Assembly: GCA_043228905.1 (NCBI GenBank)
Contig: JBHGNT010000012.1
Span: forward strand, 12,710,001-12,774,000
Source: Azolla caroliniana
Lineage: Eukaryota; Plantae; Polypodiophyta
DNA: 64,000 nucleotides
Direction of reading: 5' to 3'
Shown here: one piece after another, positions 10,601 through 45,399 of the stretch
Numbering within the stretch: position 1 is the first letter of the stretch
How the letters are laid out: every line of letters starts with the position of its first letter
Translations under genes and position numbers: made by a program
The notes under the pieces: model-generated
Told to the model about the DNA's origin: nothing
Seen by the model: only the letters and a program-made list of their open reading frames with translations
Databases searched by the model: none

Positions 10601-11513
10601 TCATTTGGTTCAGATATGGGGAATTGAGCCCACTGTAAGTGATCACACCTATACGGTGCACTTGGCTGATGGAAGAGTACAATACATCAACGTGGCGATT
10701 CATTCATTAGGAATTTCTATTGATACTTATATAGAGGAAGTAGACTTCCATGTAATGAATCTTTGTACCATTGATGTAATACTAGTTATCCCTGGTTCTA
10801 TAATAAAAACTCTTCTTTATCTATTGATAAGGTTAATCATTCAATAACATTTGTACTGAACAATTGTACTCATTTTATTCAATGTGTAAAAAAACAATCC
10901 CTCTCAATTGTTTCCTCTCCATCAAGATCCGAGTTGCCTTGTTCTACTCTATTTTATTGTGTACTTAGTCTGGACATTCACGTTTACAATATCGATAATG
11001 TCTCGGTTCAATTAACATATTTTGAACAACAACAACTTGATGAAATCTTAAACGATTTTCATGATGTTTTTCCAAGTGAACTACCAGATGGGTTACCTCC
11101 TAAACGTAATAAGTCGATCCGAAGAGGATGAGGTATCTAAACAACTCAAGTACTATTTACGAATGGGTTATATACGTTATAGTAAATCTCCATGGGGTGC
11201 ACCAGTTCTCTAGGTTAAAAAGAAAGAGGGCACATGGCGTATGTGTATTAATTACCGACGCTTGAATAAAGTGACGATCAAGAATTCGTATCCTTTGCCT
11301 CGGGTTGATGATCTAATTGACCGTCTTTAGGGAGCTCGGTAGTTTACGAAACTTGATCTCCGTACTGGCTACCATCAAATTCGTATAAGTGAGGACGACG
11401 CTCCTAAAACGGGATTTCGTACGCGCTATGGCCATTATGAGTTTTTGGTTATGCCTTTTGGTTTGACCAATGGTCCGACTACATTTCAACAAGAAATGAA
11501 TGACATTTTCCGA
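7656..11513 (+). mobile_element. Decayed chromovirus family D, copy D2, head-to-head with D1, truncated in RT
   Basis: LTR 3' part to about 7809, PBS TGGTATCAAAGCC 7812-7824, gag fragments 9406-10406, PR 10503-10847, RT to 11513 where it joins host repeat DNA at CGA(C). Confidence 0.9.
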
Positions 11514-12020
11514 CGGCTTCGTCCAAGTTCTTACTTATCATTATGTTCTTGTAGGTGACTAACCTGTATATCGACGGAGTTTTGGCACTCTTGCCTCAAC
11601 TCTCGGTCTTGTGGCTCATCGTGATCGCTACTACGACGATCCCGATCCTGTTCAGACTCTCTCCTATTGTTTCTACGTTGTCCTTCATCGAGGGATCCTA
11701 CACGACATCGGTCACGCCTCTCCTCCTCGACATCCTTCTCCCTACATCGATTGCGCCTCTCGTCACGTGACTCATCACGATCGCGACTGCGAAGATCCCG
11801 TTCCTCTTTGAACTCTCTCTTGTTGTATTCCTAGCGCCCCTCCTCGATGGACCCCTCACGAAGTCCCCCACACCTCTCCTCATCCAAGTTCTCCTCTCCT
11901 CATTTGTCGTCGATCGCGCCTCTCCTCTTCGTGATACCGTACTACAGATCTAACATTGGCCGCGCTGCAGGCGGCTAGTATGATAACCGCCATGAGGAAT
12001 ATGATAATCAGCTTCGCCAT
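11511..12020 (-). pseudogene. 2S-albumin-like storage protein copy S1 (5' half; 3' end lost)
   Basis: ATG at 12020 reads MAKLIIIFLMAVIILAACSAAN (signal peptide), then R/E/D-rich repeats and LRQECQN; internal deletion and frameshift. Confidence 0.6.
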
Positions 12021-12086
12021 TGCTTGTGTTCGGAACTACCCTAGTTCTCTCTCTGCGTATTTGAGTGGGTCATAGTTGATTCACCC

Positions 12087-12124
12087 TTATATACACAAGG
12101 CCATGGATGTCTAGTACATGCATG
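12087..12124 (-). promoter_or_regulatory. TATA box plus RY box (CATGCATG) of S1
   Basis: TATATAA on the minus strand at 12093-12087; CATGCATG at 12117-12124; the same layout precedes the other copies, with some decay. Confidence 0.6.
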
Positions 12125-12214
12125 TCCCTTCCCACATCCATTCCTATAGACATTAATTGCATGATCCATACTTGGTCCACGTAAGACACCAATTACTTTT
12201 CACCACCCCCCTTT

Positions 12215-12318
12215 TGTCATGAACAGTACTGAGACAGAGAAGGAATTAGTACTAAACGAAGGATTAGTACTATGAGAGGTGTGGAACTTCTTCGAGAGAA
12301 GGAAGAAGTGAGCGAGAC

Positions 12319-12372
<54 letters not shown>

Positions 12373-12662
12373 AGAAAGATATTTATTATATGAAGAGAAT
12401 ATACAACGGTGGCTAAAAGGCTTAAGACTGGCGTTGAACCAATTTGGTTCAACATAATGGCTAGTGCCCTCTTTTATAGTGTTTTCAGGAGTAATCCTGA
12501 AGCTTCTAGAATGTTCCAGAGAAATCTGGAATATACACTAATTTCCTATAATAAAATGTAAATGAAAATAATATCCTACGTATTACAATAGATGGTCTAA
12601 TGGTCAAGAGCTCGACCCATATAATCTAAGGTCATGGGTTCGAGTCTTGCCATATCATGACA
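12215..12662 (-). repeat. 3' LTR of element A
   Basis: TGTCATGA..TCATGACA termini; adjacent PPT (ctatccccccttt on +). Confidence 0.95.
12586..12657 (+). ncRNA. tRNA-like A/B-box cassette at the U3 end of the element A LTR
   Basis: TGGTCTAATGG 12593-12603 and GGTTCGAGTC 12637-12646, starts 44 nt apart as in tRNA; also at 21351/21395 and, degenerate, at 54265/54309. Confidence 0.55.
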
Positions 12663-15600
12663 CTATCCCCCCTTTAAAACGACGAGTGTCACGAGTCGTC
12701 TTGGATTGAGGACCCGATTTGTGTGGATATTGACGATGGAAGTCTTCAAGAAGAGCACGAGCATTGGTTACATTCTCGATCGGTTCCCAAGTACGTTCGC
12801 TGGGACTATAGCCTAGCCAATCGACTAGATAGTAGAGCTTGTTGCGAACAATCTTGGAATCAAGAATGGCGGCAACCTCGTACTCCGGCCCATCTTCAAG
12901 CTCGATCGGGGGTGGAGGTTGGATAAGACGTTCTGGGATGGTGCTCTCGTGGTAGGGTTCGAAGAGAGAACTATGAAACACCGGATGTATCTGAAGTTGA
13001 GGAGGTAGATCGAGACGAAAAGCAACATCATTAATCTTTCCAATAATACGGAAAGGACCTAATCGCCGATAATCCAACTTCTCACATGGGCGAGTAGTCT
13101 TGATGTGTCGTCGTAGCAACCACACCCGATCTCCAATATTAAAACTAGATGGAAGTCGATGACGATCCGCGTAGACCTTGTGTGTTTGTTGAGCTTGCTG
13201 GAGATGAGTAGATAAATCCGCTTGTATCTTGCGTAACCGCTCCAAACGATCCTCCGCGCACGGATTTGTGGACACCTCTGGGGTTTCAAGTACACTCCAC
13301 CGGGGGTGACATCCCGTATAAGCATAAAATGGCGTAACTTTAGTGGATGCGTGGATAGAGTTGTTATAGGCAAATTCGGCGAAGTGGAGAATATCGGCCC
13401 AGTCGTCCTGATGATAGCTGAGAAAGCACCGCAGATACTGCTCCAACGTTTGATTTGTTCGTTCAGCTTGGCCGTCAGTTTGTGGGTGGTAGCCGGAAGA
13501 GAGGTTACAAGTGACCTTGAGCATGTTAAAAAGGTGCTTCCAGAATTTTGACACGAACTGGGGTCCACGGTCGCTAATGATACTATCGGGGAGTCCATGA
13601 TGCCGACATACTTCACGCATGACAATTTCGTAAGTGTCTTCACTGGAGATCTCCTTAGTACATGGCAAGAAATGAGCCATCTTCGTATATCGATCGACCA
13701 CCGTTAGAATCGCATTGAACCCCTTAGAGACTGGAAGATCTGTGATGAAGTCTAGAGCAATGGATTGCCACGGCTTGCTTGGAATTGATAATGGTTCTAA
13801 TAAACCATATGGATGATGCCTTGGCATTTTCGCTCTACAACATGTATCACAAGTCCGAACAAAATCCTCAACAAATTGTCGCATACAGGGCCACCAGAAT
13901 GATCGTTGTACTAAATGTAATGTTTTAGTACTACCAAAATGCCCAGCTGTATATGTGTCATGACAGTTTTGTACTACTCGAAGGCGGCAAGAACCATTAG
14001 GAACATACAAAAGTTCTTTAAAGAAGAGTAATCCATCATGGTATTTGAATTGCCGATAGTCCGTACCTGGTGGTTGCGACTGTGAACACGACGCTCGAGA
14101 GGGATCAATTTGTGCTAGTATAGCTTGGGCGAACGCATCTGTCTTCAAGTCTTCACGTATGGTATCGATAACGCGGGAATCCATAGGCATGTCAAAGACT
14201 TGTGTTGCTTGTAATCGTGCCGGTCCCAAGATGACTTGTTTTTGGTTATCGAAAGTTGGCTCGCCGGGACGGGGTGCTAGATACGAACGCCGTGATAATG
14301 CATCTGCCTTCCCTTGGTGCCTCCCCGGACGATATGTAATTTTGAAGTCGAAACGCGTGAGGAAGTGGGCCCACCGAGCTTGACGTCGATTCAACACATG
14401 AGCATCCTGAAAGTAGGCAAGATTCTTGTGGTCACTAAATACGGTGACTGGATGAGAGGATCCCTCCAGAAAATGCCTCCATTGCATAAAAGATTCCACT
14501 ATTGCCAGTAGCTCCTTATCATGGATTTCGTAGTTGATTTCGGCGGCATCAAACTTGCGTGAGTGAAAAGCCACAGGATGTAGCTTTTCATCATTCCCCT
14601 GTTGTGACAGAATGCTCCCCAATGCAAAATCCGATGCGTTAGCTTCGATAATGAATGGTTTCTCCGGATCGACATGAGCTAGAATTGGAGCCGATGTAAA
14701 TGCTTTTTTAAGACTCTCGAAAGCCATGTCCGTTTCTTCAGACCAGATGAACGGTTGTCCCTTCCTGGTAAGTTGTGTGAGAGGTAGAATGATCTTTGAG
14801 TAATCCTGTATGAACTTCCGGTAAAAATTGGCAAAGCCTAAGAAGCATTGCACATCCCGTACCGAACGCGGAGTCTGCCATTCTACCACCGTTCTGACCT
14901 TAGCTGGGTCCATGGAGATGCCTTCTGACGAAATGATGTAGCCGAGAAATTCCACTTGGTTGCACCCGAAACTACATTTTTCTAGCTTTGCATACAGACC
15001 ATGTTCTCGAAGTCGTTTTAGTACTAATAGTACATGAGAATCATGTTCTTCTTGGGTCTTTGAATAAACCAGTAGATCATCCAAATAGATGATCAAACAA
15101 TCATCCAATAGATCTCGGAATATATCATTAGCCATGTGCTGGAAGACTGCCGGCGCATTAGTGAGGCCGAACGGCATGACAGTATACTCGAAGTGCCCAT
15201 ATCTGGTGCGAAACGCGGTCTTCCATTCGTCTCCTGGTCGGATCCGTACGAGGTTATATGCTCCCCGTAAGTCGATCTTCGTGAAGAACCTGGCACCATT
15301 GATCCGTTCTAAAAGACTTGAGATAAGGGGAAGAGCATACCTATTCCTGATTGTAACCTTATTCAAGCCACGGTAATCTACAACGAGACGAAGCGATCCA
15401 TCTTTTTTCTTGACGAAGAAAATGGGCGCACCGGCTGGAGATTTCGAATGCCGAATGAAACCATTTTCCAAATTCTCCTCTATATAGGCCCGAAGGACTT
15501 CCAGCTCGGTTGGTGACAAATTGTAGATCGGTCCCCATGGCGGCTCTTTTCCCGGTTGTAAATCGATGGGGCAATTGTACGGTCGATGATGAGGAAGTGT

Positions 15601-16251
15601 GTTGGCTTGTACTTTATCGAACACATCGGTGTAATGGCGATACTTCTCGGGAAGTTGAACGGTGGATTCTTCTTTAGTGGTGTTGGAGGGGTTTACTGAT
15701 ATTGCAAAGAGGAACATTTCCTCCTTGTGCCCTTCTTTACGCAACTGACGTAGCGAAATGGTTGCCATCTTCTGAGTTGACCCTTGGGTTTGTCGATACC
15801 GGATTTCTCTTGTTCTCCAATCTATGTCAGGGTTATGTAACTCGAACCACGGTAGTCCTAAAACTATAGGATGTTCTGGGATACTAATAATATTAAATGA
15901 TACTACACATACTAAGTTATCTAGGACAATATTAATGGGCTCTGACTCTTCTAGGATATTTCCGGAAGCAATGGGACGTCCATCAATGACTACTACAGAG
16001 GCTGGACACTGGAGTTTTCTTAGGGATATCTTATGAGGTTGAGCAAATTTCTTATCCATAAAGCAAGAGTTAGCTCCGGAATCTAGGAGTGCTAGGACAT
16101 GTACTGGAGGGGTACTTTTAGTACTAACTATTACTTGGGCTACGAACACATCACTAACTTGCTTAGAGGGAATGGAACCACTAATGGGCTGCACAGATCT
16201 AGGGCTGTCCAACCAAACAGCTCCTATTTTGGCTGGACTTAGTCGTTTAAC
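12655..16251 (-). CDS. pol: Pol of element A: PR-RT-RNase H-integrase-chromodomain, reached by a -1 frameshift
   Basis: LLDSGA; YLDD; [20 protein letters not shown]; IN H-H-C-C, D-D-E and GPF; chromodomain YEVAAILDS..YLVDWLGY..TWEP; uninterrupted 1185-aa ORF. Confidence 0.95.
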   Translation of the reverse strand, partial: VKRLSPAKIGAVWLDSPRSVQPISGSIPSKQVSDVFVAQVIVSTKSTPPVHVLALLDSGANSCFMDKKFAQPHKISLRKLQCPASVVVIDGRPIASGNILEESEPINIVLDNLVCVVSFNIISIPEHPIVLGLPWFELHNPDIDWRTREIRYRQTQGSTQKMATISLRQLRKEGHKEEMFLFAISVNPSNTTKEESTVQLPEKYRHYTDVFDKVQANTLPHHRPYNCPIDLQPGKEPPWGPIYNLSPTELEVLRAYIEENLENGFIRHSKSPAGAPIFFVKKKDGSLRLVVDYRGLNKVTIRNRYALPLISSLLERINGARFFTKIDLRGAYNLVRIRPGDEWKTAFRTRYGHFEYTVMPFGLTNAPAVFQHMANDIFRDLLDDCLIIYLDDLLVYSKTQEEHDSHVLLVLKRLREHGLYAKLEKCSFGCNQVEFLGYIISSEGISMDPAKVRTVVEWQTPRSVRDVQCFLGFANFYRKFIQDYSKIILPLTQLTRKGQPFIWSEETDMAFESLKKAFTSAPILAHVDPEKPFIIEANASDFALGSILSQQGNDEKLHPVAFHSRKFDAAEINYEIHDKELLAIVESFMQWRHFLEGSSHPVTVFSDHKNLAYFQDAHVLNRRQARWAHFLTRFDFKITYRPGRHQGKADALSRRSYLAPRPGEPTFDNQKQVILGPARLQATQVFDMPMDSRVIDTIREDLKTDAFAQAILAQIDPSRASCSQSQPPGTDYRQFKYHDGLLFFKELLYVPNGSCRLRVVQNCHDTYTAGHFGSTKTLHLVQRSFWWPCMRQFVEDFVRTCDTCCRAKMPRHHPYGLLEPLSIPSKPWQSIALDFITDLPVSKGFNAILTVVDRYTKMAHFLPCTKEISSEDTYEIVMREVCRHHGLPDSIISDRGPQFVSKFWKHLFNMLKVTCNLSSGYHPQTDGQAERTNQTLEQYLRCFLSYHQDDWADILHFAEFAYNNSIHASTKVTPFYAYTGCHPRWSVLETPEVSTNPCAEDRLERLRKIQADLSTHLQQAQQTHKVYADRHRLPSSFNIGDRVWLLRRHIKTTRPCEKLDYRRLGPFRIIGKINDVAFRLDLPPQLQIHPVFHSSLFEPYHESTIPERLIQPPPPIELEDGPEYEVAAILDSKIVRNKLYYLVDWLGYSPSERTWEPIENVTNARALLEDFHRQYPHKSGPQSKTTRDTRRFKGGIVS

Positions 16252-19200
16252 TCTTCTTCTAACTGACTAAGGACATCAAATTTGTTTGCTAGATCTGGGA
16301 TATTAGTACTATTAGGACTATCAGATATCCCTACTGAAATAGGTTCGGATTTAGTACAATTAGAACTAGCGACTATTTGGTTTACCTGTCTTCTTGGCCT
16401 ATGGGGGCAATTTATTGCGATATGTCCTGGTCCACCGCAGTAAAGACATAGTCGATTTGTACGGCGTCGCTGCTTTTCTTCTTCGGATAATGGCCCTCGA
16501 CGACGTGTAGTGTCAATCTCCATCGGAGTCGGAGTATTCGCTGGAGACGCATTATATGACTCCCTCGGAAAAGGTCTTGCTACCACTGAGGCGTAGGTGG
16601 GCTCTGATCTTGCCCTCGGCATCTGTAGCTGTCGTTCCGAACGTCGCTCAAAGAGGCGGTTGTCACATCTCACCGCGCGACTGATTGCTTCTGTTAAGGA
16701 CTTTGGCTCTTCGGGGAAGGTCAAGAGTAAATCCTTGACGTCGTTGCGTAAACCATAACGGAATTGCTCCATCAACGCTTGATCATCCCAAGGGATATCG
16801 GCGGCGAGTAGGCGAAAATCTGCAGCGTATGCGGAGGTTGGACGGTCACCTTGGCGTAATCGCCGGATTTTGTTGATTGCGGTCCTGATGCTGTCAGTAT
16901 CTCCGAAACATGCTTTAAACTCACCTAGAAACTCTTCAAAATTGTTGAGTAACGGAGATTCCTTTTCTAATAGTGGAGCGAACCATGACAACGCTGAGCC
17001 ACTTAACAAAGTGCCTACTAAACCCACTCGTGATGCATCGGTGGGATATCGGGAAGGATGCATTTGAATAACTAATCGTACCTGGTTAAGGAACCCTCTA
17101 AACTGCGATCGCGTTCCATCGAACTTCGTGGGAAGGCCAATCTTAGGTTCTTTATGAATCCCTTGTGTTCCGGGCCCATGTTGTTGCATCGCTACGATGG
17201 TGGCTTCGAGTTGTTGCACGCGTTGTCGTAGTGTATTTTGTACACTACGTGAAAAACGTATATAGTATTAGATTCAATAAAAAATGAAGAAATAAAAGAA
17301 AATAGCAAAATAAATGGAACATGCATAGGGCAAGATTCGAACCTTGCACCTCCATGTTAATAATGTAATGTCTTACCATTACACTAGCATTTCATTAGTG
17401 TTAAAGCATAGATGTCCCACATAGAAAGGTAAATTCACGCTAGGATAAACATTAGAAAAACGCATAACAAAAGAAAAAGCTACACATACACATCTAGCGT
17501 GCATGATAAAAAACGCACAAGTTAGAAAAAAGCATGATCACTTTAGATAAAGCATATAGTCTATCTATAGGAAAAGCATGGGGTCTATAGTTAGAGAAAA
17601 AGCATGGATTACTAAGACTTCCTCATCACTACATAAGGATGGGGAGCACAATGTAATTGTGTGTGAAAAATATTTGGAAACTAGATATGTTTCTAAAAAA
17701 CACCAATTAATAAACTATACTCGTGGGATTCACGAGAATTCTATATCATTCTCTTTCAACCGAAGTTTATATTCTTATATTCATATTGATTAATCTAATA
17801 CAATACACTCGTGGGATTCACGAGTTTTCTATAACTCTTTCTTACAACATATTTATATTCTTATTAGCCTTAAAACTCTCCTCTTCCTAGTCCAAAACCC
17901 CAGTGGTTCCCACCCGACTCACGCAAACGATCCGGAGCCGAAAGGCACGACATAGTTGGTGAACCCGACGTGAAGACGGGTGGCAAGGAGATGGAGAATC
18001 AACAAGAGGCGATGAACATGATGATGATAATGTTTGAGCGGATGCAACAAGAACAACGTGCAATGTCGGAGATGAAGGCGGCAGTAGAGCGGCTTCTGCG
18101 ACGAAACGGGGAATTCAACGGTAAGGGTGTGTCACGCTACCTACGTGAATATAAGGCGGAGATGATGCAATATCGGATACCGGAAGGATTGCAAGTGATA
18201 TCCTTTAGTCGGGTGGCCTCGGACGAACTACAAGAGAGAATCCACAAGATACAACAACAAAACTCGACATGGGAGTCCTTTGAAGAAGCTTTACGAGAGG
18301 CATATGACTACGAGAGATCGAAGGGACGAGATCGACGAGAATTCGACGAATGGGTGGCGTCGGAGAAGACTCACCGAAGTGCAACGCAAGCGTTCCTAGA
18401 GTTCGAGCATCGTTTTGCTCGACTCTCGGAGCGGGAACGAAGATTGGTGGGAGGAGATAAAGTCTTAATGTTCGTAAGATCGATCGATCGGAAAGAAAGG
18501 ATGGACATTGGGATCGAACTCGAAGATGATGACGGTGCGAACGGCCTTACCGAGGATTGGGCCAAAGTCGAAAGGGTATGCCGAAGACATGATGAAAGGA
18601 AGCTGAGAATCTCGTCAACAACGACATGGCCCATGAAGGATGGTCGATTGAGGAAAAATGATGAAGCCAATATGAAGGCCGAAATACAACATGATGGTAC
18701 CACGGGAGAAAGAGTGGAACAAGACACCCACTCGTCTTGTGAAAGAACGATGGCGAAGGATAAGGCCGATAATTCAAGTGTAGAAGGAAATTTCGGGATA
18801 CAAGTGCCCGAGACATCAGGTCAAAAAGGGGTAAGCATAATAGATGTTTGCATAATTGATGCAGATAAAGAGTGTGAAGCGGATGTGATTAAGGAGGTAG
18901 CCACAAAAGACGAAATCGAATCGGAGGTGGCTATGGACGAATCAATGGCGGATTGCTATATCGAGACTTCCCCACCACTGATTCCAGAGACTCCGGCGGT
19001 TGCGATCTAAAGGCAACGTGAGACCGAAGAGACGGAAGGTGGCGGAGAGAAAACGAATGTCGAAGCCGACGAATACGATGAAGAGATAGCCGAGAAGAAT
19101 GCTAAGGGTGAAACTACGAAAGAAGGTAATACCGAGGATTCATGCCAACAATATCTAGAGACTTCGGCGGTTGTGTCCGAGAACCAACGTGAGACCGGAG

Positions 19201-20913
19201 AGACGGGAGATGGCGGCGAGGAAGGTAAAGTCGGAAGTCGGTTCGGATGGAAAATGATTCATCCGAAATTCCAATCTAAAAGAAAGTGCGACAATGCGGA
19301 GGTCGGGTCTACGACGGGAGAAGCGCGTAATACAGAGCACGCTCTACGGCGAATAAAGAAACGCGTGTTATGGCGAATAAAGAAGCACGCGCTACGGCGA
19401 GAAAAGAAGCATGCATTACAACCACACGAGGACCGAACAACGAGCACATATCGGAGGACCTACGTAGCGAACAACGGAAAGAAGTGCCGAAAGTCGAACC
19501 GGACAAGGCAGGTGAAAACGAAGAAAAGAAAGCAAATCCGGACGAAAAGAAAAGAAAAGAAACCGACCCGAAAGAGCACTGAATCGGTAAAAACCGATCA
19601 ACCGAGTCCGGATCGACCGAATACAAATCGGAAAGGAAGCCGAACTAAACGAAAGACGATCCGACGAGACCGAATCGGAAGTAAGCTAATCCGACTAAAC
19701 CGAAAATCCGAAAAGAAGTCGAGATTGATGAGGAAAAGAAAGAGGGCAAGAAAAGATACTACCGCGGATGACAAGGACCAAGCGGGCCATGCAAAAAGCG
19801 AACGAAGACTATGGTGGATCGGATGTCGACAATGGTTTGGGTGGAAAGAATGGATGTGCTCCAAATGGAGAGACAAAGTCAACATAACAAGAGAAGTCGA
19901 GGGTACTACGAGCCGGCAACGAAACCAATCGGGTAGAGACCGGACGGAGGAGACTAACAAACACCAACAACTTCGGCACATACCGGAGGATGTGCGGGTT
20001 TGGAGGGGGCGAGTGTCGTAGTGTATTTTGTACACTACGTGAAAAACGTATATAGTATTAGATTCAATAAAAAATGAAGAAATAGAAGAAAATAGCAAAA
20101 TAAATGGAACATGCATAGGGCAAGATTCGAACCTTGCACCTCCATGTTAATAATGTAATGTCTTACCATTACACTAGCATTTCATTAGTGTTAAAGCATA
20201 GATGTCCCACATAGAAAGGTAAATTCACGCTAGGATAAACATTAGAAAAACGCATAACAAAAGAAAAAGCTACACATACACATCTAGCGTGCATGATAAA
20301 AAACGCACAAGTTAGAAAAAAGCATGATCACTTTAGATAAAGCATATAGTCTATCTATAGGAAAAGCATGGGGTCTATAGTTAGAGAAAAAGCATGGATT
20401 ACTAAGACTTCCTCATCACTACATAAGGATGGGGAGCACAATGTAATTGTGTGTGAAAAATATTTGGAAACTAGATATGTTTCTAAAAAACACCAATTAA
20501 TAAACTATACTCGTGGGATTCACGAGAATTCTATATCATTCTCTTTCAACCGAAGTTTATATTCTTATATTCATATTGATTAATCTAATACAATACACTC
20601 GTGGGATTCACGAGTTTGCTATAACTCTTTCTTACAACATATTTATATTCTTATTAGCCTTAAAACTCTCCTCTTCCTAATCCAAAACCCCAGTGGTTCC
20701 CACCCGACTCACGCAAACGATCCGGAGCCGAAAGGCACGACAGCGTAACGCAAGTTCCCCATGTTGTTGTTGCGTTTGCTGCTTTTCTAAGGAGATTTGC
20801 TGAAGATCCCCCAGCAACCGTTGGTTTTCTTGTTCCAAAGCATGGAACTTCTCCTTCAAGCATTGGAATTCCGAGAAAACAGATTGATATTCTTCAGCGC
20901 TAACAGTGGCCAT
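16239..20913 (-). CDS. gag: Gag of element A, split by element B (segments 20913-20743 and 17219-16239)
   Basis: Removing B and one TSD copy restores the frame ..HGELALRVQQLEA..; capsid motifs; zinc knuckle CLYCGGPGHIAINC. Confidence 0.92.
17957..17974 (+). promoter_or_regulatory. Primer binding site complementary to the plant tRNA-Trp 3' end
   Basis: TGGTGAACCCGACGTGAA is the reverse complement of TTCACGTCGGGTTCA+CCA; near-identical sites at 40834-40817 and from 45936. Confidence 0.85.
17991..20021 (+). CDS. Gag-derived ORF of B with an acidic middle and a very basic tail; one in-frame stop at 19008-19010
   Basis: ORFs 17970-19010 and 19173-20021 are in the same frame with an open linker between them; the N-terminus is homologous to C/E gag (RRNGEFNGKGVSRYLREYKAEM). 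Confidence 0.7.
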
Positions 20914-20986
20914 GGGATGAAAGAAAAGAGGAATAAAAGATTAGTAGGAAATGAGAGAGACAGAAGGTAGGCAAATTGGTTCAAAC

Positions 20987-21090
20987 TGTCATGAACAGTA
21001 CTGAGACAGAGAAGGAATTAGTACTAAACGAAGGATTAGTACTATGAGAGGTGTGGAACTTCTTCGAGAGAAGGAAGAAGTGAGCGAGAC

Positions 21091-21130
<40 letters not shown>

Positions 21131-21420
21131 AGAAAGATATTTATTATATGAAGAGAATATACAACGGTGGCTAAAAGGCTTAAGACTGGCGTTGAACCAA
21201 TTTGGTTCAACATAATGCCTAGTGCCCTCTTTTATAGTGTTTTCAGGAGTAATCCTGAAGCTTCTAGAATGTTCCAGAGAAATCTGGAATATACACTAAT
21301 TTCCTATAATAAAATGTAAATGAAAATAATATCCTACGTATTACAATAGATGGTCTAATGGTCAAGAGCTCGACCCATATAACCTAAGGTCATGGGTTCG
21401 AGTCTTCCCATATCATGACA
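20987..21420 (-). repeat. 5' LTR of element A
   Basis: Matches 12215-12662; TATAAAA on the minus strand at 21236-21230. Confidence 0.95.
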
Positions 21421-22353
21421 CCTTTACGTGTCCATGATCCTCCTCCTTGGACCTACCATATCATTATCCCTATACTCATCTCCATTACACAAGGAGTAGG
21501 ATTATGTGCTTGGGTGTTTCAAATCTACTAACCTATGGATGCTTCGTCCATATTGCAACGTCGACAGTATGTAACCCGATGATAGCCCCCTACACATGTG
21601 ATGCCATTGAGGTTGTAGAGTGTGTATGGGCCTCATAAAACGAGGATAAGGTGGTAAGAGAAGGTTTTTAGGGTGTTGGTTCTCTCCACGAATATGTTTT
21701 TGGCGGTTGTGGTCACCGCGGAGTTTAGAATGCACTGCGACTAACATACGGACAACGGCATGTGTTTTGATTGTGATTACCAGATCCGTCGTCGTTGTGG
21801 ACGCTGCAACATCTGACGCAAATGAAGGTGGCACCATTCAAAGGCAACATTTCGAGGTGAAACATGCGTGGGTAGGTGCACACGATGATGAAATGGTAGA
21901 TAGACATGAGAATGTCATGTGGAATCATGTTTATAGTAGGAGTTACGATCAGCCACTATTATTGCGCACATCATGGTACGGTAGGACACGACATTGTATG
22001 AGGGTGGCTTCAATACAACATTGTGATGGCATCGACGTTTGACGAGTTTCGCGCTGCTTGTGAGAGAGATAACGATAGGTGGATAGAGATAGATATAGGT
22101 AGGGCAGAAATGAGGTAGTGTGCATGTGGGCACGCAACCTAATCTTGTGTGCGTAAGAAACCATGCGTGTGGAGTTTCATTTTGTTTGGGCACTGAGCGA
22201 CCAAGGGCACGTGACCTAATCGTGTGTGTGTGTGTGTGTGTGTGTGTGTTGTGCGCGCTCGTGGGAGAAATATGATTGAGAGGGTTATGAGAACGTCAAC
22301 ACACCACAAAGCACACCATTTACGATGTTCAAAAACTGTATAGTTGAAAATGT

Positions 22354-23412: not shown

Positions 23413-24487
23413 TGCTTGTCTTGGGAGCAACCCCGGTTCTCTCTCCACCTATTTGAGTGGGTCATAGTTGATCCACCCTTATCTACACAAGGCCCTGCAT
23501 GTCCCTTCCCACGTCCATTCCTATAGACGTTAATGGCATGATCCATACTTGGGCCACGGAAGAAACCATTCACTTTTCACCACGCCCCTTTACGTGTCCA
23601 AGATCCTTCTCCTTGGACCTAGCATATCACTAGACCTATAGTCACCTCCATCACACTACGAGTGGGATTATGCAGTTGGGCATTTCGAATCTACTAAGGT
23701 ATGGATGCTTCGTCCATATTGCAAAGTAGACAGTATGTAACCTCATGATAACGACCTACACATGTGAGGCCATTGAGGTTGTAGAGTGCGTATGGGCCTC
23801 ATAGCATGAGGATAATGTGGTGAGAAATGGTTTTTAGCGTGTCTGTTCTCTCCACGAATATGTTTTTGGCGGTTGTGGTCACGAGGGAGTTTAGAATGCA
23901 TTGCGACCAGCATATGGATGACGGCATGCGTTTTCATTGTGATTAGAAGATCCGTCGTCGTTGTGGACGCTGCAACACCTGAGGAATATGACGGTGGCAC
24001 CATTCAAAGAAAACATTTCTAGGTGAAACATGCGTGGGGTGGTGCACACGATGATGAAATGGTAGATAGACATAGGAATGTCATGTGGAATCATGTTCGT
24101 AGTAGGAGTTACGATCGGACACTACTATTGCGCATATCATGGTACAACGAGACACGTCATTGTATGAGGGTGGCTTCAATACAACATTGTAACGAGTTTC
24201 GTGTTACTCGTGAGAGTGATAGTGATACATATAGGTAGGGCAGGAGTGAGGTAGCATGTGTCTGGGCACGCGACCTAATCATGTGTGCATGAGAAACCGT
24301 GTGTGTGGAGTTTCATTTTGCCTGTGCAACGAGCGAGCAAGGGCACACGACCTGATCGGGTGTGTGTGTGTGTTGTGCACGCATGGGAGAAATATGATTG
24401 AGAGGGTTATAAGAACATCAAGAGACCACAGAGCACACCATTTACAATGTTCAGAAAGTGTATAGTTGAAAATGTTATGTACCTTGT

Positions 24488-25369
24488 TTAAAATTTGTGA
24501 ATACAAGCGCGTGGGCGAAGATAACATTGATGGAGGAAGCGAGAGGTTGCCACACTTAGAAGGTGATCCTCCTCACCGGCCTTGAAATGACGACGTTATT
24601 CCTCATGTTGTCGTCCGGTGATGCGATAACGACACTCATCCTCCTTGCGCTCGCATTGTCTCTCTTTCGCTCGGCATCCTCTTCAAATTAACCACGTTCC
24701 TTGGACACTTCGCTATGGCAGTGACCATCATTACGTGCCTCTTCTCCACTAATGTATAAGGCCTCACGGAGCCAGTTGCAACGCTCTTCTACGGGGATTT
24801 GTTCCACATTCCTGCAGCAGCTTTCAGAGGGCCTTGCATATCGGCTGATTTCATCCCAAGAGGTGCGACGGCTTCTTCCACGTTCTTCCTTATCATTACG
24901 TTGTTGTAGGTGGTAGACTTGCCTATCGACGAAGTTTTGGCACTCTTGCCTCAACTCTTGGTCTCATGGCTCATCGCGATCGTGATCCTCTTCAGACTCT
25001 CTTCTTAATGGACCCATCACGACATCCCCCGCACTTCTCCTCATCGAAATCCTCCTCCCTGCATCGATCACACCTCTCCTCATGTGGACCATCGCGATCA
25101 CCACTCTGACAATCCCGGTCCTGATCCGACTCTCTCTTGTTGTCTCTATTGCGCCTCTCATCGATAGATCCCTCATGGCGCCCGTTGCGCCTCTCATCGT
25201 CGACATCCTCCTCCCTACATCGATCGCGTCTCTCCTTGTTAATATCTCCCTCTCTTCGTCGATTGCACCTCTCCTCTTCGCTATCTCGTGCTATAGATCT
25301 AGCAATGCTAGCCCTCTAGGCGGTTAGCATGATAACCGCCATGAGGAATATGATAGTGACCTTCGCCAT
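24488..25369 (-). pseudogene. 2S-albumin-like storage protein copy S3
   Basis: Signal peptide with TAG at codon 18; LRQECQNFVDRQV..RPSESCCRNVEQIPVEERCNWLREAL; C-terminal HQCYLRPRAC. Confidence 0.7.
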
Positions 25370-26446
25370 TGCTTGTGTTGGGAACTACCCCGGTTCTCTC
25401 TCTACCTATTTGAGTGTGTTATAGTTCATCCACCCTTATATACAGAAGGCCATGCATGTCTAGTACACGCATGTCCCTTCCCACGTCCATTCCTATAGAT
25501 GTTAATGGCATGATCCATAGTTTGGCCATGGAAGAGACCATTCACTTTTCACCACCCATCTTTACGTGTCCAAGATCCTCCTCCATCGACCTACCATATC
25601 AGTAGCCCTATACTCACCTCCATCACAACCAAGAGTGGGATTATGCACTTGGGCATTTCAAATTTACTAACCTATGGATGCTTCGTCCATATTGCAACAT
25701 AGAGAATATGTAACCTTAGGACGGGCCTCGTAAAATGAGGATAAGGTGGTGAGAAAAGGTTTTTAGGTTGTTGGTTCTCTCAACGAATATGTTTTTGGCG
25801 GTTGTGGTCACGAGGGAGTTTTGAATGCATTGCGACCAACATACGGATGACGACATGCAATTCCGTTGTGATTACAAGATCCGTCGTCGTTGTGGATGCT
25901 GGAACACCCAAGGAATATGAAGGTGGCACCATTCAAGGACAACATTTCTAGGTGAAACAAGCGTGGGTAGGTGCACACAATGATGAAATGGTAGATAGAC
26001 ATGGGAATGTCATGTGGGATCATGTTCATAGTAGGAGTTACGATCAACTATTACTATTGCGCACATCCTGGTACGACGTGACACGTCATTGTATGAGGGT
26101 GGTTTCAATACAACATTGTGATGGCATCGACTTCTGAGGAGTTTTGTGTGGCTCGTGAGAGAGATAAAGATAGATGGATAGAGATAGATATAGGTAGGGC
26201 GGGAGTGAGGTAGAGTGCGTGTGGGCACGCGACTTAATCATGGGTGCGTGAGAAACTGTGCGTGTGGAGTTTCATTTTGCCTATGTAACGAATGAGCGAG
26301 GGCAGACAACCTAATCGTGTGTGTGTGTGTTGTTCGCGCGAGTGGGAGAAATATGATTGAGAGGGTTATGAGAACGTGAAGACACCACAGAGCACACCAT
26401 TTACGATGTTCAGAAAGTGTATAGTTCAAAAAATTATGTACCTTCT

Positions 26447-26700
26447 TTACAAGAGGCGAATACAAGCATGTGGGCGAAGATGACATTGTTGTAGAAGGTG
26501 AGAGGTTGCCATGCATAGAAGTTATTCCTCCTTACCCGCCTTGAAATGACGACGTTCTTCCTCATCTTGTCGTCCGGTCATGCGATAACGACACACGTCC
26601 TCCTCGCGCTCGCTACTGTGTTTCTCTCGCTCGGCATCTTCTTCACATTGACCACATTCCCTGGACATTTCGCTATGGCTGTGACCATCATTGCGTGCCT
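26447..26700 (-). pseudogene. 3' fragment of copy S4
   Basis: C-terminal QQCHLRPHAC segment; the 5' part is deleted at the D3 junction. Confidence 0.6.
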
Positions 26701-26728
26701 CCGTGAAGTCTTATACATTAGCGGAGAA

Positions 26729-29700
26729 TTTGGTTGTCTTTGGTGTTCTTGATTAATGGTGATCGATCAATGTGCGGTCGGCCTTGATCCAGACAACGAT
26801 CAACAAAGACCTTCAGTAACTCTTTCCTTATTTATTTTTTTCTATTTTTTCTTCTCCCATCTAATCATGTGTATAGTTTATATGTAATTGTTTTCATTAA
26901 TTTAATGATGTTGTAGTGGTAATTAATTGGTTGTATAAAACGTATACATATGTGTATGAGGTCAATACCTCATTTGACATATATTGAATATGTGATTAGT
27001 GTCGTATGCGTATAAGGTCAATACCTCGATTTCATTGTAAATGATATGTGTTTGGTCTCGTATGCGTAAGAGGTCATACCTCAATTGCGTATTACGATGA
27101 ACCCTTATTTTTGGATGTTTCGTTTGCATAGAGGTATATGCGTCGATTACAAATTTCGATTATATATTTCTTGGCTATTTGATGTAACGATTTGTTTAAT
27201 ATATGCATATGTGGTCACGTATATACATATTGGATCGTATATATGTGATAACATACATATGTGTATATAAGTTATTACGTTAGTTTAATATCGAATGTTT
27301 TCATTTTCAGGGAAAGGATTTTGGTGGCCGTCTTCACATTTTTGTGAGAATGGCGTTGTCACCATCCCTTTTTTCAACAATTTTTTATTATTGACATGCC
27401 CATTGGTGACTTCTATTTTATTACGTAAAGAAATGTCTAGAGCCACAATGATGTTGAGAACGATGGGCTTGACCCACTTGATGTGAGGTCGCTCTTATGA
27501 CACACATATCCACCATCCCTCCCTGATTACATGGATACGTTGCCACCATGAGATCATTCTTACGAAAGGCATTTGTAATCACGTAACCATGTGATGGGCC
27601 ACGTGGGCCTAATACGAAAAGAGGGCTCATTTGGCATGACCATTAGGTTGCACTTTGGCATATGCCATCATAATTACGATACTTGACATTAGGTAACGTA
27701 CCAAGAAAGTTTGTGGTAAACGAGGGGAAAATAAGGAGTCTTGTCATATATGTTTCTTTTAAAAAAACATATATGGGCAAATGCCTTGCATATCTCTCAT
27801 ACGCATGAAACATTAAACATTCAAAAAGAGCAACCTAATTGCTTAGCTCAAGTGTTTAATGCATTTTTTCTGAAGGTCTCGAGTTCAAATATAAGCAAGA
27901 CCATACAACATTGTTGATACATATGATTATAACACATGTTTAGACTTGAGGTCTAAGTGCACTTCGGGGTCCTCGTAATAGGACTTAAAGAGCCGAATCC
28001 ACGTATGTGGGCACCGAAACATAGTTTATTGTTAACATTTCTTTCGTGTATAAACTATTCATAATGCAAACATACATCGTTGAGCCTCAGGGAGACGCCA
28101 TGAAAAAATCGATATACAAATGAGTGAAAGACATTAATTTGTCACCCCCATGGTTTTTAAAACACTTTTGTGTTACCATAGTAACCTTATCTTCAACCTC
28201 ATCTCATACGTCTAGAGGGTTATTTATGATATCGATTAATGTTTGCCCATGATATGTTTACATCACGACATGATGATATGACTATTTGTCTAACCTTATC
28301 CTATTTCTTTGCCGGAAATAACCATTCAATGGCTCAAAATAATGACCCGATGTCATCCGCTCAAGCGGAAGGAACTCAAGGAAATCCTCCTGGACAATTG
28401 TCCATTGAGATGCATTTTTCACAAATAAGCCAATACCTTAGTTTCACCGCTCAATAGATGACCGAACTTCGGAAATCTCAAGGTCCTCTCGAGGCACGGG
28501 TCATTAGTTTACAACGTGTGATTAATAGACCTGATCAGCGACAAGGTGAACCATCGTTTCTCGTTAAGCCATTTATGGGAGAAAAAAAGAAAAGAACCGA
28601 GGAAGCAATCTGCACGTGGCTGGGCCGATGGGAGTCTCATTTTGAGCTCTTTCCCACGCAAGATAGTACGAAGATTGCATATGTTGGCCTGGTGGCGTGG
28701 GCTCTGATCTTTTGGGAAATTGACCGATACCTGGACAGATTTTGTCACAATTTTTAAGGGCCTATTTCTGCAACATGTCTCTCAAACCGAGGCAACTGAA
28801 GCTTTAATAAACCTCTCTAGCAGGAAATTTTCTTCCCTAGAAGACTATGTCCACCATGCTGGAACTCAAATCCAAAAATCGGGTCTAGAAGGGGACAATT
28901 GGTTAATAGCTTGTTTTGTCAATAGCTTGTTTTGTCAACGGAAAGAGCACGACAACAAAGCTAAAGCTGCAGACCATACAGGTCAGATTCCTAATGTCCT
29001 TGAGGTCTATACACATCATTTGAGTAATTGCCAATGTTCTTTCCCTAACAATGTATTGGGCCCAATGATTTACTATGTGCAAACGGGTATATCAATGGAT
29101 CTCCCGTACAATTTTTGTTTGATTCGGGAAGCTCACACAATTTTGTGAATGATCGTTTGGTTTAGATATGGGAATCCAACCCACCATAAGTGATCACAAC
29201 ACCTATAGGGTGCACTTGGCTGATGGAAGAGTATAATACATCAACGGGGCGATTCATTCATAAGGAATTTCTATTAACACTAATACTTGTAATGAATCTT
29301 TGTACCACTGATGTAATACTGGGTTATCCCTAGTTTTTTTAATAAAAACTCTTTTGTATCTATTGATTGGGTTCATCATTCAATTACATTTGTAGTGAAC
29401 GATTATACTCATTTTATTTAATGTGTTAAAAAATAATCCCTCGCGATTGTTTCCTCTCCATCAATAACTGAGTTGTCTTGTTCTACTCTATTTTATTGTG
29501 TACTTGATCTAGACATTCACGTTTACAATATCGATAATGTCTCGGTTCAATTAACATATTTTGAAAAACAACAACTTGATAAAATCTTAAATGATTTTCG
29601 TCATGTTTTTTCGAGTGACCTACCAGATGGGTTACCTCCTAAAGGTAATAGAGACCATCATATAGATATTGTACCTGGCGTTGCACTAATAAGTATACCT

Positions 29701-31503
29701 CCTTATCACTTAAGTCGATCCGAAGAGGATGAGGTATCTAAGCAACTCAACGACTATTTACGAATGGGTTATATTTGTTATAGAAAATCTCCATGGTGTG
29801 CACCAATTCTCTGGGTTAAAAAGAAAGACATTGTATGTGTATTAATTGCCGACGCTTGAATAAAGTGACGATCAAGAATTCGTATCCATTGGATGATATT
29901 TTAGTTTATAACCGTACATTACAAGAACATGCTAAACATGTCCGCTTTGTCTTACAAGCATTGCGTTACAAACAGTTTTATGCGAAGACCTCAAAATGTG
30001 AGTTCTTCAAGAAATCCATTACTTATCTTGGACATCTCATAACCAAACGAGGAGTTGAAATTGATCCTTCTCGCATCGAGAAAATCAAGCTTTGGCCCAC
30101 TCTTCGGAATATTCGAGAAGTTTGATCATTCCTTGGTTTTGTCGGGTTTTTGCGAAAATCCCTTTGTAATTACTCCCAATTGAGAACGTCGTTTACCGAT
30201 CTTCAAAAAGGTCCAACGCATAAGTCTACAAAATCTATTGTTTGGAATTCTACACTAGACCTCGCCTTTAAGGAACTCAAGGACCTGGTGTGCAAGACCG
30301 CGAGTCCTTGAAATATTTTTGTCACCAACAAGACCTGAAAGGTTGTAAGGCACGATGGCCTGATCTCATCCAGGAGTTGGATTTTTCCATTCGATATCGT
30401 AAAGGATCCATTAACACTGTCGCTGATGGACTAAGTGGCATCCGTGAAGTTAACATGCTTAGCTTCACTGAAATAACATCAGATCTTTATGATCACCTTT
30501 CTTCGGGATATGTAAGATATGTTGCATATTGCACCAGATAATATAAAAACGGCTCAAGATAAAGCACGTTTTTATGCCAATCATCATAGGAAACCTCATG
30601 TATTCAACCTTGGACAGAAGGTATTTTTACGTGTACCTTAAAATTCTAAGACATTGTCTAAGGGTTAGTGCGCTAAGATAGCCTCACGGTTTTGTGGACC
30701 TTTTATAGTGCTCAAACGCACAGGGTCACCAGCCTATCTTCTCGCTCTTCCCGATGGTGTGTAAATTCATCTAGTTTTTCATGTGAGTCGTCCAAAAGAG
30801 CTTCTAGGTTCTAGCGACAATACAGTTACAACTGAAACTCTGGTTACTTTTGAGGAATTATCTTCTAAACCACATGTACCAGAAAGAATTTTCAATGTTA
30901 AAACAAAAAAAAAACGTATTAAAGAAATTCGGGAATTTAAAATAAATTGGATGGATAAATCAATAAAAGATGCCACATGGGAACGCGAAAATACTCTCAG
31001 AACTTACTTCCCTAACTTTCCATTGCAAAACTGCACTGTTTTAAAGAGGGGGAGTATGTTACGGGCATGACCATATAATATCCCGTGGTGATAATTTACC
31101 GTAGTATTCTATACACGTGGATAAGTGTGAGGGTTAAATTAGAGTGTAAAGAAGGGGAGGATTACTTTTAATACTCGATATTGAAACAACCTATTAGGCC
31201 AACTGTGAACTTGCCTGGGGGCCTTGGGTATCGCTATAACTAAGAGGCCTAGCTACCCTCATTTCATCATTTTCTGACTACGTCGAGACTCTGTTCTTGT
31301 GGTGGGTCAACTCTTGTAGTGAGCACGCCAGCACCAGGTACGACACGACGCCACATCGGTGGTATGGGACGCCGATCGAGGCTCGAGTCCGTCTCGATCT
31401 CTTCGCTTGGGGGTGGATCGGCACCCTTCTTTCTCTCTGTCCTCTCTATCTAGATCTATCGTTTATCCTTATCCTTTGCTTACATTAGTACATATCTCTA
31501 ATA
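26729..31503 (+). mobile_element. Decayed chromovirus family D, copy D3 (5' LTR lost; integrase core deleted; 3' LTR 31057-31503)
   Basis: gag/PR/RT/RH fragments; chromodomain PERIFNVKT..FKINWMDKSIKDATWE (30783-31070); PPT AAGAGGGGGAGTA before TGTTACGGG. Confidence 0.9.
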
Positions 31504-32019
31504 ACATTTCTAGGTGAAACATGCGTGGCTAGGTGCACACGATGATGAAATGGTAGATAGTCGTGGGAATGCCATGTGGAATCATGTTCGTAGTAGGAGT
31601 TACAATCAGCCACTACTATTGCGCACATCATGGTACGGGGAGACACGACATTTTATGAGGGTGGCTTCAATACAACATTGTGATGGCATCAACGTCTGAT
31701 GACTTTCGCGTTGCTCGTGAGAGAGATAGCGATAGATGGATAAAGATATATATAGGTAGGGAGGGAGTGAGGTAATGTGCGTGTGCACAGGCGACCTAAT
31801 GATGTGTGCGTGAGAAACCGTGCGTCTGGGGTTTCATTTTGCTTTTGTAACAAGCGAGCGAGGACACACGACCTGATCATGTGTGTGTGTTTGTGTTTGT
31901 GTGTTGTCCGCATGTGGGGAGAAATGTGATTGAGAGGGTTATGAGAACGTTAAGACACCACAGAGCACACCATTTATGATTTTCGGAAAGTGTTTAGTTA
32001 AAAATGTTATGTACGTTCT

Positions 32020-33199
32020 TTAAAAGTGGCGAATACAAGCGCATGGGCGAAGATCACATTGTTGGAGGAGGCGAGAGGTCGCCACGCATAGAAGTTGTTC
32101 CTCCTCACCGGCCTTGAAACGACGATGTTGTTCCTCATCTTGTCGTCCGGTCATGGGATAACGACTCTCGTCCTCCTCGCGTTCACTATTGTTTCTCTCT
32201 TGCTCGGCATCTTCTTCCCATTGAAGACGCTCCCTGGACACTTGGCTATGGCGATGACTTCATTGCGTGTGTCTTCTCCGCTAATGTCTAAGGCCTCACG
32301 GAGCCGGTTGCAACGCTCTTCTCCGGGGATTTGTTCCACGTTCCTGCTACATCTTTCAGAGTGCCTTGCATATCAGTTGATTTCATCCAAAGAGGTGTGA
32401 CGACTTGGTCCACGTTCGTCCTTATCATTACGTTCTTGTAGGTGGCGGACCTGCCTATCGACGATGTTTTGGCACTATTGCCTGAACTCTCTATCTCATG
32501 GCTCATCCCGACTACGACGATGCCAATCCTCTTTGGACTCTCTACTGTTGTTTCTGTGACGTCCTTCATTGAGGGATCATTCATGACGTCGGTCACGCCT
32601 CTCCTATTCGACATCCTCCTCCCTACATCGATCGCTCCTCTCGTCACGTGACTTATCCTAGACGATCCCGTTCCTCTTCAGACTCTCTCTAGTTGTCTCT
32701 ACGATGTCCTTCATCGATGGATCCTTCACGACAAGACGACTATCATGTTCGACATCCTCCTCCCTACGTTGATCACGCCTCTTGTCCCGTGACTCAGCCC
32801 GATCACGACTGCGACGATCCCGTTCTTCTTTCGACTCTCTCTTGTTGTCTCTGTATCGCCCCGCCTTGATAGACCCCTTGCAACATCCCCCCCGCCTCTC
32901 TTCATCGAAATCCTCCTCCCTGCGCCGATCGCGCCTCTCCTGACGTGGCTCATTGAGATCGCGACTATGACGATCCCAGTCCTCATCCGACTCTCTCTTG
33001 TTGTCTCTGTAGCGCCTCTCATCGATGGATCCCTCACGGCGTCGGTTGACCCTCTCCTCGTCGACATCCTTCTCCCTATGTCGATCACGTCTCTCCCCGT
33101 TAATGTATCCGTTTCTTCGTCGATCGCGCCTCTTCTCTTCCCGTTGCCGGTGGTTAGCATGATAACCACCATGACGAATATGATAGTGAGCTTCGCCAT
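32020..33199 (-). pseudogene. 2S-albumin-like storage protein copy S5 (frameshifted)
   Basis: MAKLTIIFVMVVIMLT start; end EEEQLLCVATSRLLQQCDLRPCACIRHF*; two RY boxes upstream at 33281 and 33296. Confidence 0.65.
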
Positions 33200-33988
33200 T
33201 GCTTGTGTTCGGAACTAGCCCGATTCTCTCTCCGCCTATTTGACTGGGTCATAGTTGATCCACCCTTATATACCTAACGCCATGCATGTCTAGTACATGC
33301 ATGTCCCTTCCCACGTCCATTCCTAAAGATGTTAATGGCATGATCCGAACTTGGGCCATGGATGAAACCATTCACTTTTCACCACCCCCCTCCTCCTCCT
33401 TTGACCTACCATATCGCTAGCCCTATACTCATCTCCATCACACTAGGAGTGGGATTATGGACTTGGGCGTTTCAAATATAGTAACCTATGGATGCTTCGT
33501 GCATATTGCAATGTAGACAGTATGTAACCTCATGATAGCCACCTACACATGTGATGCCATTGAGGTTGTAGAGTGTGCATGGGCATCGTAAAATGAGGAT
33601 AAGGTGGTGAGAAAAGTTTTTTAGGGTGTTGATTCTCTCCACGAATACGTTTTTGGCGGTTGTGGTCATGAGGGAGTTTAGAATGCATTGCGACCAACAT
33701 ACGGACGAAGACATGCGTTTTCATTGTGAATACAAGATCCGTCATCGTTGTGGACACTGGAACACCCGAGGAATATGAATGTGGCACCATTCAAGGACAA
33801 CATTTCTAGCTGAAACATGCGTGGGTAACTGCACACGATGATGAAATGGTAGAGAGACATGGGAATCTGATGTGGAATCATGTTCGTACTAGGAGTAATG
33901 ATCAGCCACTACTATTGCACACATCATGGTATGACGAGACACGTCATTGTATGAGCGTGCCTTCAATACAACATTGTGATGGCATCGA

Positions 33989-45306: not shown

Positions 45307-45399
45307 TGTCGTAGTGTGAATCACACACTATGTGAAATATGTAAAACACTATATTATCCGATTTAGAGTACATATAAAAAATAATAAATAAAATATTTA

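Follow-up and report, generated by a model that had tools for sequence, protein, structure and literature searches.

Short intron-less storage genes are amplified head to tail in the zein, gliadin and napin clusters, which contain many pseudogenes and transposon insertions. Members of the prolamin superfamily share three conserved regions, A, B and C, and 2S albumins are present in fern spores (PMC4973428). The 2S albumins carry eight cysteines bonded 1-5, 2-3, 4-7 and 6-8, and are most variable between regions A and B and between C6 and C7 (PMC2570561). The B3 factors ABI3, FUS3 and LEC2 bind the RY motif in promoters of storage-protein genes (PMC3458547). Here we analyse a stretch of 64,000 nucleotides, positions 12,710,001 to 12,774,000 of contig JBHGNT010000012.1 (forward strand, called the window below and numbered from its first letter), which carries a tandem array of broken gene copies at 11511-33992. 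On balance we read it as a decayed array of genes for a secreted, arginine-rich precursor related to the prolamin superfamily, which would have served as a nitrogen reserve of the maturation phase.

A tandem array of disabled gene copies

Units were defined by comparison of the window with itself and by alignment of its three longest units. The self-comparison revealed a head-to-tail repeat on the minus strand, with units of 1.9-2.2 kb that are 78-88% identical in pairs. The array survives as six pieces derived from at least five units, the window total being only five or six units. It is interrupted twice, by a Ty3/gypsy element (12215-21420) and by a block of transposon sequence (26729-31502).

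All six pieces lie on the minus strand. The first, U1 (11511-12214), holds a promoter and the 5′ part of the gene and is truncated by a transposon at 11511. U2 (21421-23587) is the best-preserved copy, with a coding sequence at 22354-23412 that counts 352 codons from the ATG to the final stop. It is followed by U3 (23588-25557; coding sequence 24488-25369) and by U4 (25558-26728), which is reduced to its spacer and the 3′ end of the gene (coding remnant 26447-26728), transposon sequence standing in place of its upstream part. U5 (31503-33391) has its coding sequence at 32020-33199, and U6 (33392-33992) is a spacer remnant of one further unit, 87.5% identical to 21438-22039 in the self-comparison. 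The array ends at 33992, where it abuts transposon sequence.

Every window copy is disabled by stops and/or frameshifts. In U1 the coding frame is gone within about 50 codons (TAA 11531-11533). U2 is free of frameshifts and is interrupted in frame by two stops, a TAG within the signal-peptide codons (23359-23361) and a TAA ahead of its last 22 codons (22423-22425), which leave a longest open stretch of 311 aa (22426-23358). Three stops are found in U3 (TAG 25316-25318, TGA 24964-24966 and TAA 24688-24690) together with frameshifts; its piece 24691-24963 is the best-kept LRQEC...CC...ERC domain. The frame of U5 is broken by a 31-bp deletion after the signal peptide, by several stops and by 1-bp indels, and its piece 32023-32259 retains the C-terminal LLCVATSRLLQQCDLRPCAC region. 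The signal-peptide TAG is common to U2 and U3, and the TAA before the last codons is common to U2 and U4 (26522-26524 in the latter). Since stops are shared by different pairs of units, disabled copies must later have been duplicated or converted as plain repeat DNA.

The pattern of change among the copies is that of neutral sequence. The ratio of nonsynonymous to synonymous substitution (dN/dS) between window copies is 0.38-1.2, no excess of changes at third codon positions was found among them, and their coding regions are 82-86% conserved, compared to 86-91% for the spacers. Indels that break the frame measure 1, 23 and 31 bp. The window copies are thus all pseudogenes, decaying neutrally.

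Intact relatives and purifying selection

Open pieces of the broken copies were searched separately, and a profile made of them (A1) was compared to 1.84 billion representative proteins. Only two relatives were obtained, P0001 and P0002. The contigs that encode them, and four more from a metagenome scan, carry the gene in an intact state, with homologues of 292 aa (L004:447-1322), 272 aa (L007:216-1031) and 295 aa (L010:212-1096). Precursors measure 267-295 residues in the relatives and about 350 in U2. A distant paralogue type, encoded at L001:414-1214 and L011:138-950, has the same six cysteines, a different signal peptide and His- and Glu-rich loops (6.7% His, 20% Arg), without the 52-residue repeats described below; the contig shows no tandem neighbour of it. 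Bacterial and archaeal genomes, scanned for contaminating copies, contained none.

Comparison of the intact types gives a dN/dS of 0.15-0.24; their coding regions are 83-93% identical, compared to 72-77% for spacers. The 22 coding indels found in the relatives all have lengths divisible by three, which holds for 14 of the 64 spacer indels; part of this excess could be due to slippage of the in-frame internal repeats. Taken together, the low dN/dS, the in-frame indels and the stronger conservation of coding sequence than of spacer establish a real gene family under purifying selection, of which the window copies are pseudogenes. The window shares 68-78% DNA identity with the contigs of the relatives, in the coding region only, and no DNA similarity was found between the window spacers and these contigs. 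We also considered an intron that would remove the stops of the window copies, and rejected it because the intact homologues are colinear and uninterrupted.

The purine-rich repeat region is open in more than one frame, so the length of an open reading frame (ORF) is by itself no proof of coding. Prokaryotic gene callers took a shifted frame on the metagenome contigs (L004:535-750, L004:763-1257 and L002:122-586). That the family is almost absent from protein collections is explained, at least in part, by this annotation of the contigs in a shifted frame of the purine-rich repeats.

The contigs of the relatives wrap round or hold two neighbouring copies, with periods of 1640-1730 bp; the gene therefore lies in a tandem array in the relatives too. 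A JGI series (33000475xx) and an ENA series (ERZ10343xx-10344xx) have three sequence types in common, and a third series (ERZ272272xx) carries the paralogue. The k-mer coverage of unit contigs is 440-657x, that of transposon contigs of the same series 6-26x and that of the paralogue 1.5x, which as a rough estimate from values of different samples amounts to hundreds of copies. A head-to-tail arrangement is observed in the window and in the relatives, and a high copy number is suggested by the coverage of the relatives only. These three metagenome series also contain the best relatives of the chromovirus inserted in the window array (the Ty3/gypsy element mentioned above), with 84% and 70% protein identity, so the organism of the window and the eukaryotic host in the metagenomes are the same or closely related.

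Gene structure and promoter

Read on the minus strand, a unit has one or two CATGCATG motifs, followed about 15-30 bp on by a TATATAAGG box and about 70 bp further by the ATG, which stands in an ATGGC context in the window units. The reading frame has no intron. It comprises a signal-peptide-like N-terminus, 52-residue repeats rich in Arg, Glu and Asp (R/E/D repeats) and a six-cysteine domain, in which LRQEC, SESCCRNVEQIPVEERC, a charged loop and LL(S/C)VATSRLLQQCxLRPRAC follow one another up to the stop. The signal peptide, MAKL(I/T)IIF(L/V)M(A/V)VIML, is seen in U1, U2, U3 and U5 and was called by eye from its hydrophobic core, followed by A-N-A before R. The R/E/D repeats have a period of 156 bp and differ in copy number between units, U5 holding the most (32749-33096).

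CATGCATG is located at 12117-12124 in U1 (TATA-like box 12085-12094, ATG 12018-12020), at 25451-25458 in U3 (TATA box 25434-25443) and twice in U5, at 33281-33288 and 33296-33303 (TATA box 33264-33273), all on the minus strand. U2, on the same strand, has degenerate versions of the RY motif and of the TATA box (23477-23486). One arrangement is conserved between window and relatives: CATGCATG is found between -105 and -108, TGCATG follows about 20 bp further on as a second motif, and the TATA box stands near -75; in the promoter of the paralogue, CATGCA motifs adjoin the TATA box. CATGCATG occurs six times in the window for 1.35 expected, and four of these six are inside unit promoters. This conserved pair of RY motifs, CATGCATG and TGCATG, upstream of the TATA box suggests expression while a seed or spore matures or desiccates.

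A further element, GACACGTAAAG, has an ACGT core and is conserved where units join (21422-21432, 23588-23598 and 25560-25570, minus strand), about 190 bp ahead of the ATG. In the relatives, TACGTAGGACAC is found at a comparable distance from their ATG. Judged by its motif, the element may be a G-box-like companion of the RY motifs.

These observations agree in large part with what the original prediction had read from the letters of the window. Its five units of about 2 kb were essentially right, and the minus-strand motifs that it quoted are all present (LRQEC, PSESCCRNVEQIPVEERC, ATSRLLQQCxLRPRAC and the signal peptide included). R/E/D repeats in variable number, a length of about 350 aa and the breakage of every copy were likewise recovered. 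It had seen here an array of gene copies and not an anonymous satellite, which the selected, intact homologues elsewhere bear out, and the intact paralogues that it proposed to look for exist (the L004, L007, L010 and L001/L011 ORFs, under purifying selection). The protein is also nitrogen-rich, as it had supposed, with its 31% Arg.

Relationship to the prolamin superfamily

Past the presumed signal peptide, the intact proteins consist of Arg to 31%, Glu to 21-22% and Asp to 11%, which amounts to about 2.0 nitrogen atoms per residue, and have a grand average of hydropathy (GRAVY) of about -2.4. Six cysteines are conserved across the window copies, the three intact types and the paralogue. Regions A (LRxxCxxFIxxQ), B (RCCRxxExIPxExRC) and C (SRLLQQCxLRPRAC) follow one another in the domain as is usual for the superfamily, and long charged insertions separate A from B and B from C (C6-C7). 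The cysteine-bearing A, B and C are the most conserved parts across paralogues, and the charged repeats vary in number and sequence. A kinship of these repeats with vicilin-type CxxxC hairpin peptides was rejected, the repeats of the intact relatives being devoid of cysteine.

In a scan with 24,736 Pfam models, PF00234 (Tryp_alpha_amyl; protease inhibitor / seed storage / LTP family) was the top match for every member of the family. The family profile A6, compared to PDB sequences, gave barley limit dextrinase inhibitor as best match (4cvw_C, E 0.012), then ragi bifunctional inhibitor (1tmq_B and 1bip_A) and RATI (1b1u_A) and, lower, maize inhibitor (1bea/1bfa), Mo-CBP4 (6vj0_A) and a 2S albumin (6s3f_A). 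Of its 12 PDB matches with E values of 10 or less, eight belong to the superfamily (E 0.012-3.1), the top four included. Profile A4 had three PDB matches only, all to ragi-type inhibitors, and phmmer with the window piece, like the window-only profile A1, returned chance coiled-coil matches only. Individually weak, the matches to the superfamily are consistent together, and show a similarity to its members of solved structure.

The eight-cysteine motif C...C...CC...CxC...C...C is altered in the family: the CC doublet is kept, CxC is replaced by (E/D)RC, and C1 is absent, no cysteine being found ahead of the LRxxC helix. Since (E/D)RC aligns with the CRC of 1tmq_B and 4cvw_C, the missing cysteine of CxC is C5. 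C1 and C5 are bonded together in 2S albumins, and their joint absence therefore corresponds to the loss of exactly one disulfide. Judged by position, the six remaining cysteines would then bond 2-3, 4-7 and 6-8. The absence of one whole pair, C1-C5, which the original prediction had noticed, is thus upheld by the alignment of ERC with CRC in solved inhibitors and by the lack of C1. Its assignment to 2S-albumin-like proteins of the prolamin superfamily fares less evenly: PF00234 is the top match throughout, but the scores are borderline, the eight-cysteine skeleton is missing and inhibitors match better.

Several results weigh against, or fail to support, a relationship to storage albumins or a plant storage gene as such. 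With respect to the curated gathering cut-off of PF00234 (21.7 bits), the window piece 24691-24963 scores below it (16.9 bits, E 0.0076) and the relatives, paralogue included, straddle it (20.1-22.2 bits, E 1.7e-4 to 8e-4); the intact relatives reach 20.1-21.4 bits, and only a domain-only construct, L007:516-1031, exceeds it with 22.2. The closest solved structures are inhibitors and not storage albumins. No named 2S albumin was among the matches of the A1 search, and the large protein searches gave none with an E value under 0.001. A word-index protein search with the longest open piece of the window had no match, and one with a profile of the intact family retrieved P0002 only, already known. 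AlphaFold2, run without alignment and with a shallow alignment of 17 rows, gave predicted template modelling scores (pTM) of 0.31-0.35; with such shallow input, both models show a domain with a predicted local distance difference test score (pLDDT) of 40-70 and long single charged helices, where the fold of the superfamily is a bundle of four or five alpha-helices braced by disulfides, and Foldseek found 0 matches to these models in the PDB. Finally, the named relatives of the window chromovirus among the matches listed are 40-53% identical to it and belong to the fungi Cunninghamella (53%), Powellomyces (49%) and Ustilago (44%) and to the charophyte alga Closterium (40%).

The family would work in the manner of 2S albumins, and is probably related to them and to the wider prolamin superfamily. 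We would class it as a six-cysteine, Arg-rich variant of the superfamily and not as a member of the 2S albumins, because the eight-cysteine skeleton and the precursor size of the latter are lacking and profile scores are borderline.

Transposable elements and other features of the window

The first interruption of the array is a Ty3/gypsy chromovirus on the minus strand (12215-21420), inserted just upstream of the U1 promoter. Its long terminal repeats (LTRs; 12215-12663 and 20987-21420) are 96% identical, and it is flanked by a 5-bp target duplication, CCTTT. The element is structurally complete. Its pol (12655-16212) is uninterrupted over 1185 aa and covers reverse transcriptase (RT), RNase H, integrase and chromodomain; gag (16239-17219) measures 326 aa, and both have the expected Pfam domains. 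The polypurine tract is clear, and the primer-binding site is not of the usual TGG type.

Within the chromovirus lies a second LTR element of 3.5 kb, on the plus strand (17224-20742). Its LTRs, 729 bp long, are 99.6% identical, which indicates a very recent insertion. It has two ORFs, 17970-19010 and 19173-20021, of which the first, the only one scanned, had no Pfam match; it is possibly a non-autonomous element.

The second interruption (26729-31502) is a block of transposon fragments with related copies at 5471-10118, 34302-35385 and 43121-45304. Outside the array, two 4.8-kb copies of another RT-bearing element (36619-41429 and 45368-50085) are in inverted orientation and 87.6% identical, and LTR-like pieces are shared between 35386-36044, 40839-41729 and 52253-53213.

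In the array itself, every unit has an (AC/GT)n microsatellite of variable length about 100 bp 3′ of the stop codon (e.g. 22222-22253). An ORF of 86-111 codons with an ATG start (MVPPS...) recurs in the spacers on the minus strand (21505-21837, 23746-24003 and 33533-33790) and probably arose by chance. Scans for Rfam families and for tRNAs gave no match in the window.

Proposed role and alternative explanations

The reading that we favour, and hold to be somewhat better than an even bet, is that of a decayed tandem array for a secreted, Arg-rich, prolamin-superfamily-related precursor used as a nitrogen reserve of the maturation phase. The ancestral gene encoded a secreted precursor of about 270-350 residues, composed of signal peptide, R/E/D repeats and six-cysteine domain. 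Arranged in tandem, it would have provided a high gene dosage and, through it, bulk synthesis of a product that would be deposited by way of the secretory route and degraded when the propagule germinates. Given 31% Arg and about two nitrogen atoms per residue, a nitrogen reserve appears to be the most likely role. In the window, dead copies went on duplicating or converting as repeat DNA, and LTR retrotransposons invaded the array later. A bolder version, that the family forms an undescribed clade with six cysteines and about 31% Arg, present as hundreds of selected 1.65-kb units, constituting the main nitrogen reserve of the propagule in a poorly annotated plant lineage and missed by protein databases through the wrong frames taken by gene callers, we advance only tentatively, as a possibility that would sooner fail than hold.

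The alternative that survives best is a defence protein, either an amylase/protease inhibitor (ATI/CM-like) or the precursor of an antimicrobial peptide, amplified in tandem during an arms race. Defence families typically show tandem amplification of genes for secreted proteins that contain cysteines. Antifungal activity can also be a property of 2S albumins (PMC2570561), and the best solved-structure matches of our family are limit dextrinase inhibitor and bifunctional amylase/trypsin inhibitors. These matches, however, rest on the short region-B motif, which is common to 2S albumins. A protein with 31% Arg, 33% Glu/Asp and long low-complexity loops is also unlike the compact ten-cysteine inhibitors, the dN/dS of 0.15-0.24 reveals no diversifying selection, and the RY/TATA promoter fits reserve genes of the maturation phase. 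We consider a defence role unlikely.

A secreted hydrophilic protectant or matrix protein (late embryogenesis abundant (LEA)-like, or of a spore or seed wall) is less likely again. The repeats would then be the functional part and the cysteine domain a scaffold, but conservation peaks in the cysteine regions A, B and C and not in the charged repeats. To our knowledge, typical LEA proteins have neither signal peptide nor cysteines. The maturation-type promoter would suit such a role equally, as would the extreme hydrophilicity of the mature protein (see GRAVY above) and its predicted long charged helices.

We give little credence to a non-plant host, such as a transposon-rich fungus, in which the family would be a lineage-specific secreted protein or effector and its likeness to prolamins convergent. 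The fungal and algal names of the chromovirus relatives point in that direction, and the close homologues all come from metagenome contigs. Plant annotations usually omit transposon proteins, which makes the fungal names weak evidence. PF00234 is a plant family, and two paralogue types only 35-51% identical both have it as top match among the 24,736 models; the conservation of RY-RY-TATA and the ATGGC context of the start likewise resemble plant genes. From these three features, a land plant is the probable host.

That the repeat is an ordinary non-coding satellite, with open frames as a by-product of its purine-rich repeats, might be argued from the several open frames of the repeat region, the neutrality of the window copies and the different frame chosen by prokaryotic gene callers, but it is refuted for the family by intact ORFs of 272-295 codons with signal peptide and six cysteines in three types and a distant paralogue, all their coding indels in frame and dN/dS well below 1, and it still describes only how the dead window copies behave.

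If a maturation-phase reserve of this kind is confirmed, the wider prolamin superfamily would include proteins that have lost one disulfide, doubled their length and turned one residue in three into Arg, and they would offer a handle on storage proteins outside the well-studied seed plants. The family would also illustrate how a protein-coding gene can behave as a satellite, with selected high-dosage arrays on one side and decaying arrays colonised by retrotransposons on the other. It reveals a blind spot of annotation as well, being nearly absent from 5.8 billion predicted proteins owing to the wrong reading frame.

Comparison with known systems

For the 2S albumins, we took napin, Ber e 1, Ara h 2/6, Mo-CBP and fern matteuccin for comparison, the sequence of matteuccin standing outside it. 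The family resembles them in its signal peptide, in the order of regions A, B and C, in the CC doublet and in a C-terminal motif of the QQCxLRPxxC type. Its insertions fall at the least conserved places of 2S albumins (PMC2570561), one between the parts that correspond to the small and large chains and the other between C6 and C7. Richness in Arg and Glu, promoters with RY motifs and organisation in tandem multigene families are further common traits, and the weak PDB profile matches extend to Mo-CBP4 and a 2S albumin. 2S albumins accumulate in seeds or spores as these mature and are deposited in storage vacuoles, for which the evidence in the family is indirect, namely its RY and TATA promoter and its Arg content. 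The differences are eight cysteines in 2S albumins against six here, for want of the C1-C5 pair; a precursor of about 150-190 residues (about 18-21 kDa), which 2S albumins process into a small and a large chain, against 270-350; and, in our family only, N-terminal charged repeats of 52 residues and an Arg content of 31%.

Cereal alpha-amylase/trypsin inhibitors and CM proteins provide the best solved-structure matches (E 0.012-0.03), and their region B corresponds nearly residue for residue to that of the family (RCCRxLExIPxxxRC). They differ in being compact proteins of about 120 residues with ten cysteines, without charged repeats, and the match spans only about 25-55 residues.

At the level of the locus, the relatives depart from usual gene clusters in that their unit of 1.64-1.73 kb, found at 440-657x, suggests a satellite-like copy number, on a rough estimate made across samples. 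With the zein, gliadin and napin clusters, the array has in common a head-to-tail repetition of an intron-less gene of storage type, copies that have become pseudogenes and the insertion of transposons among them.

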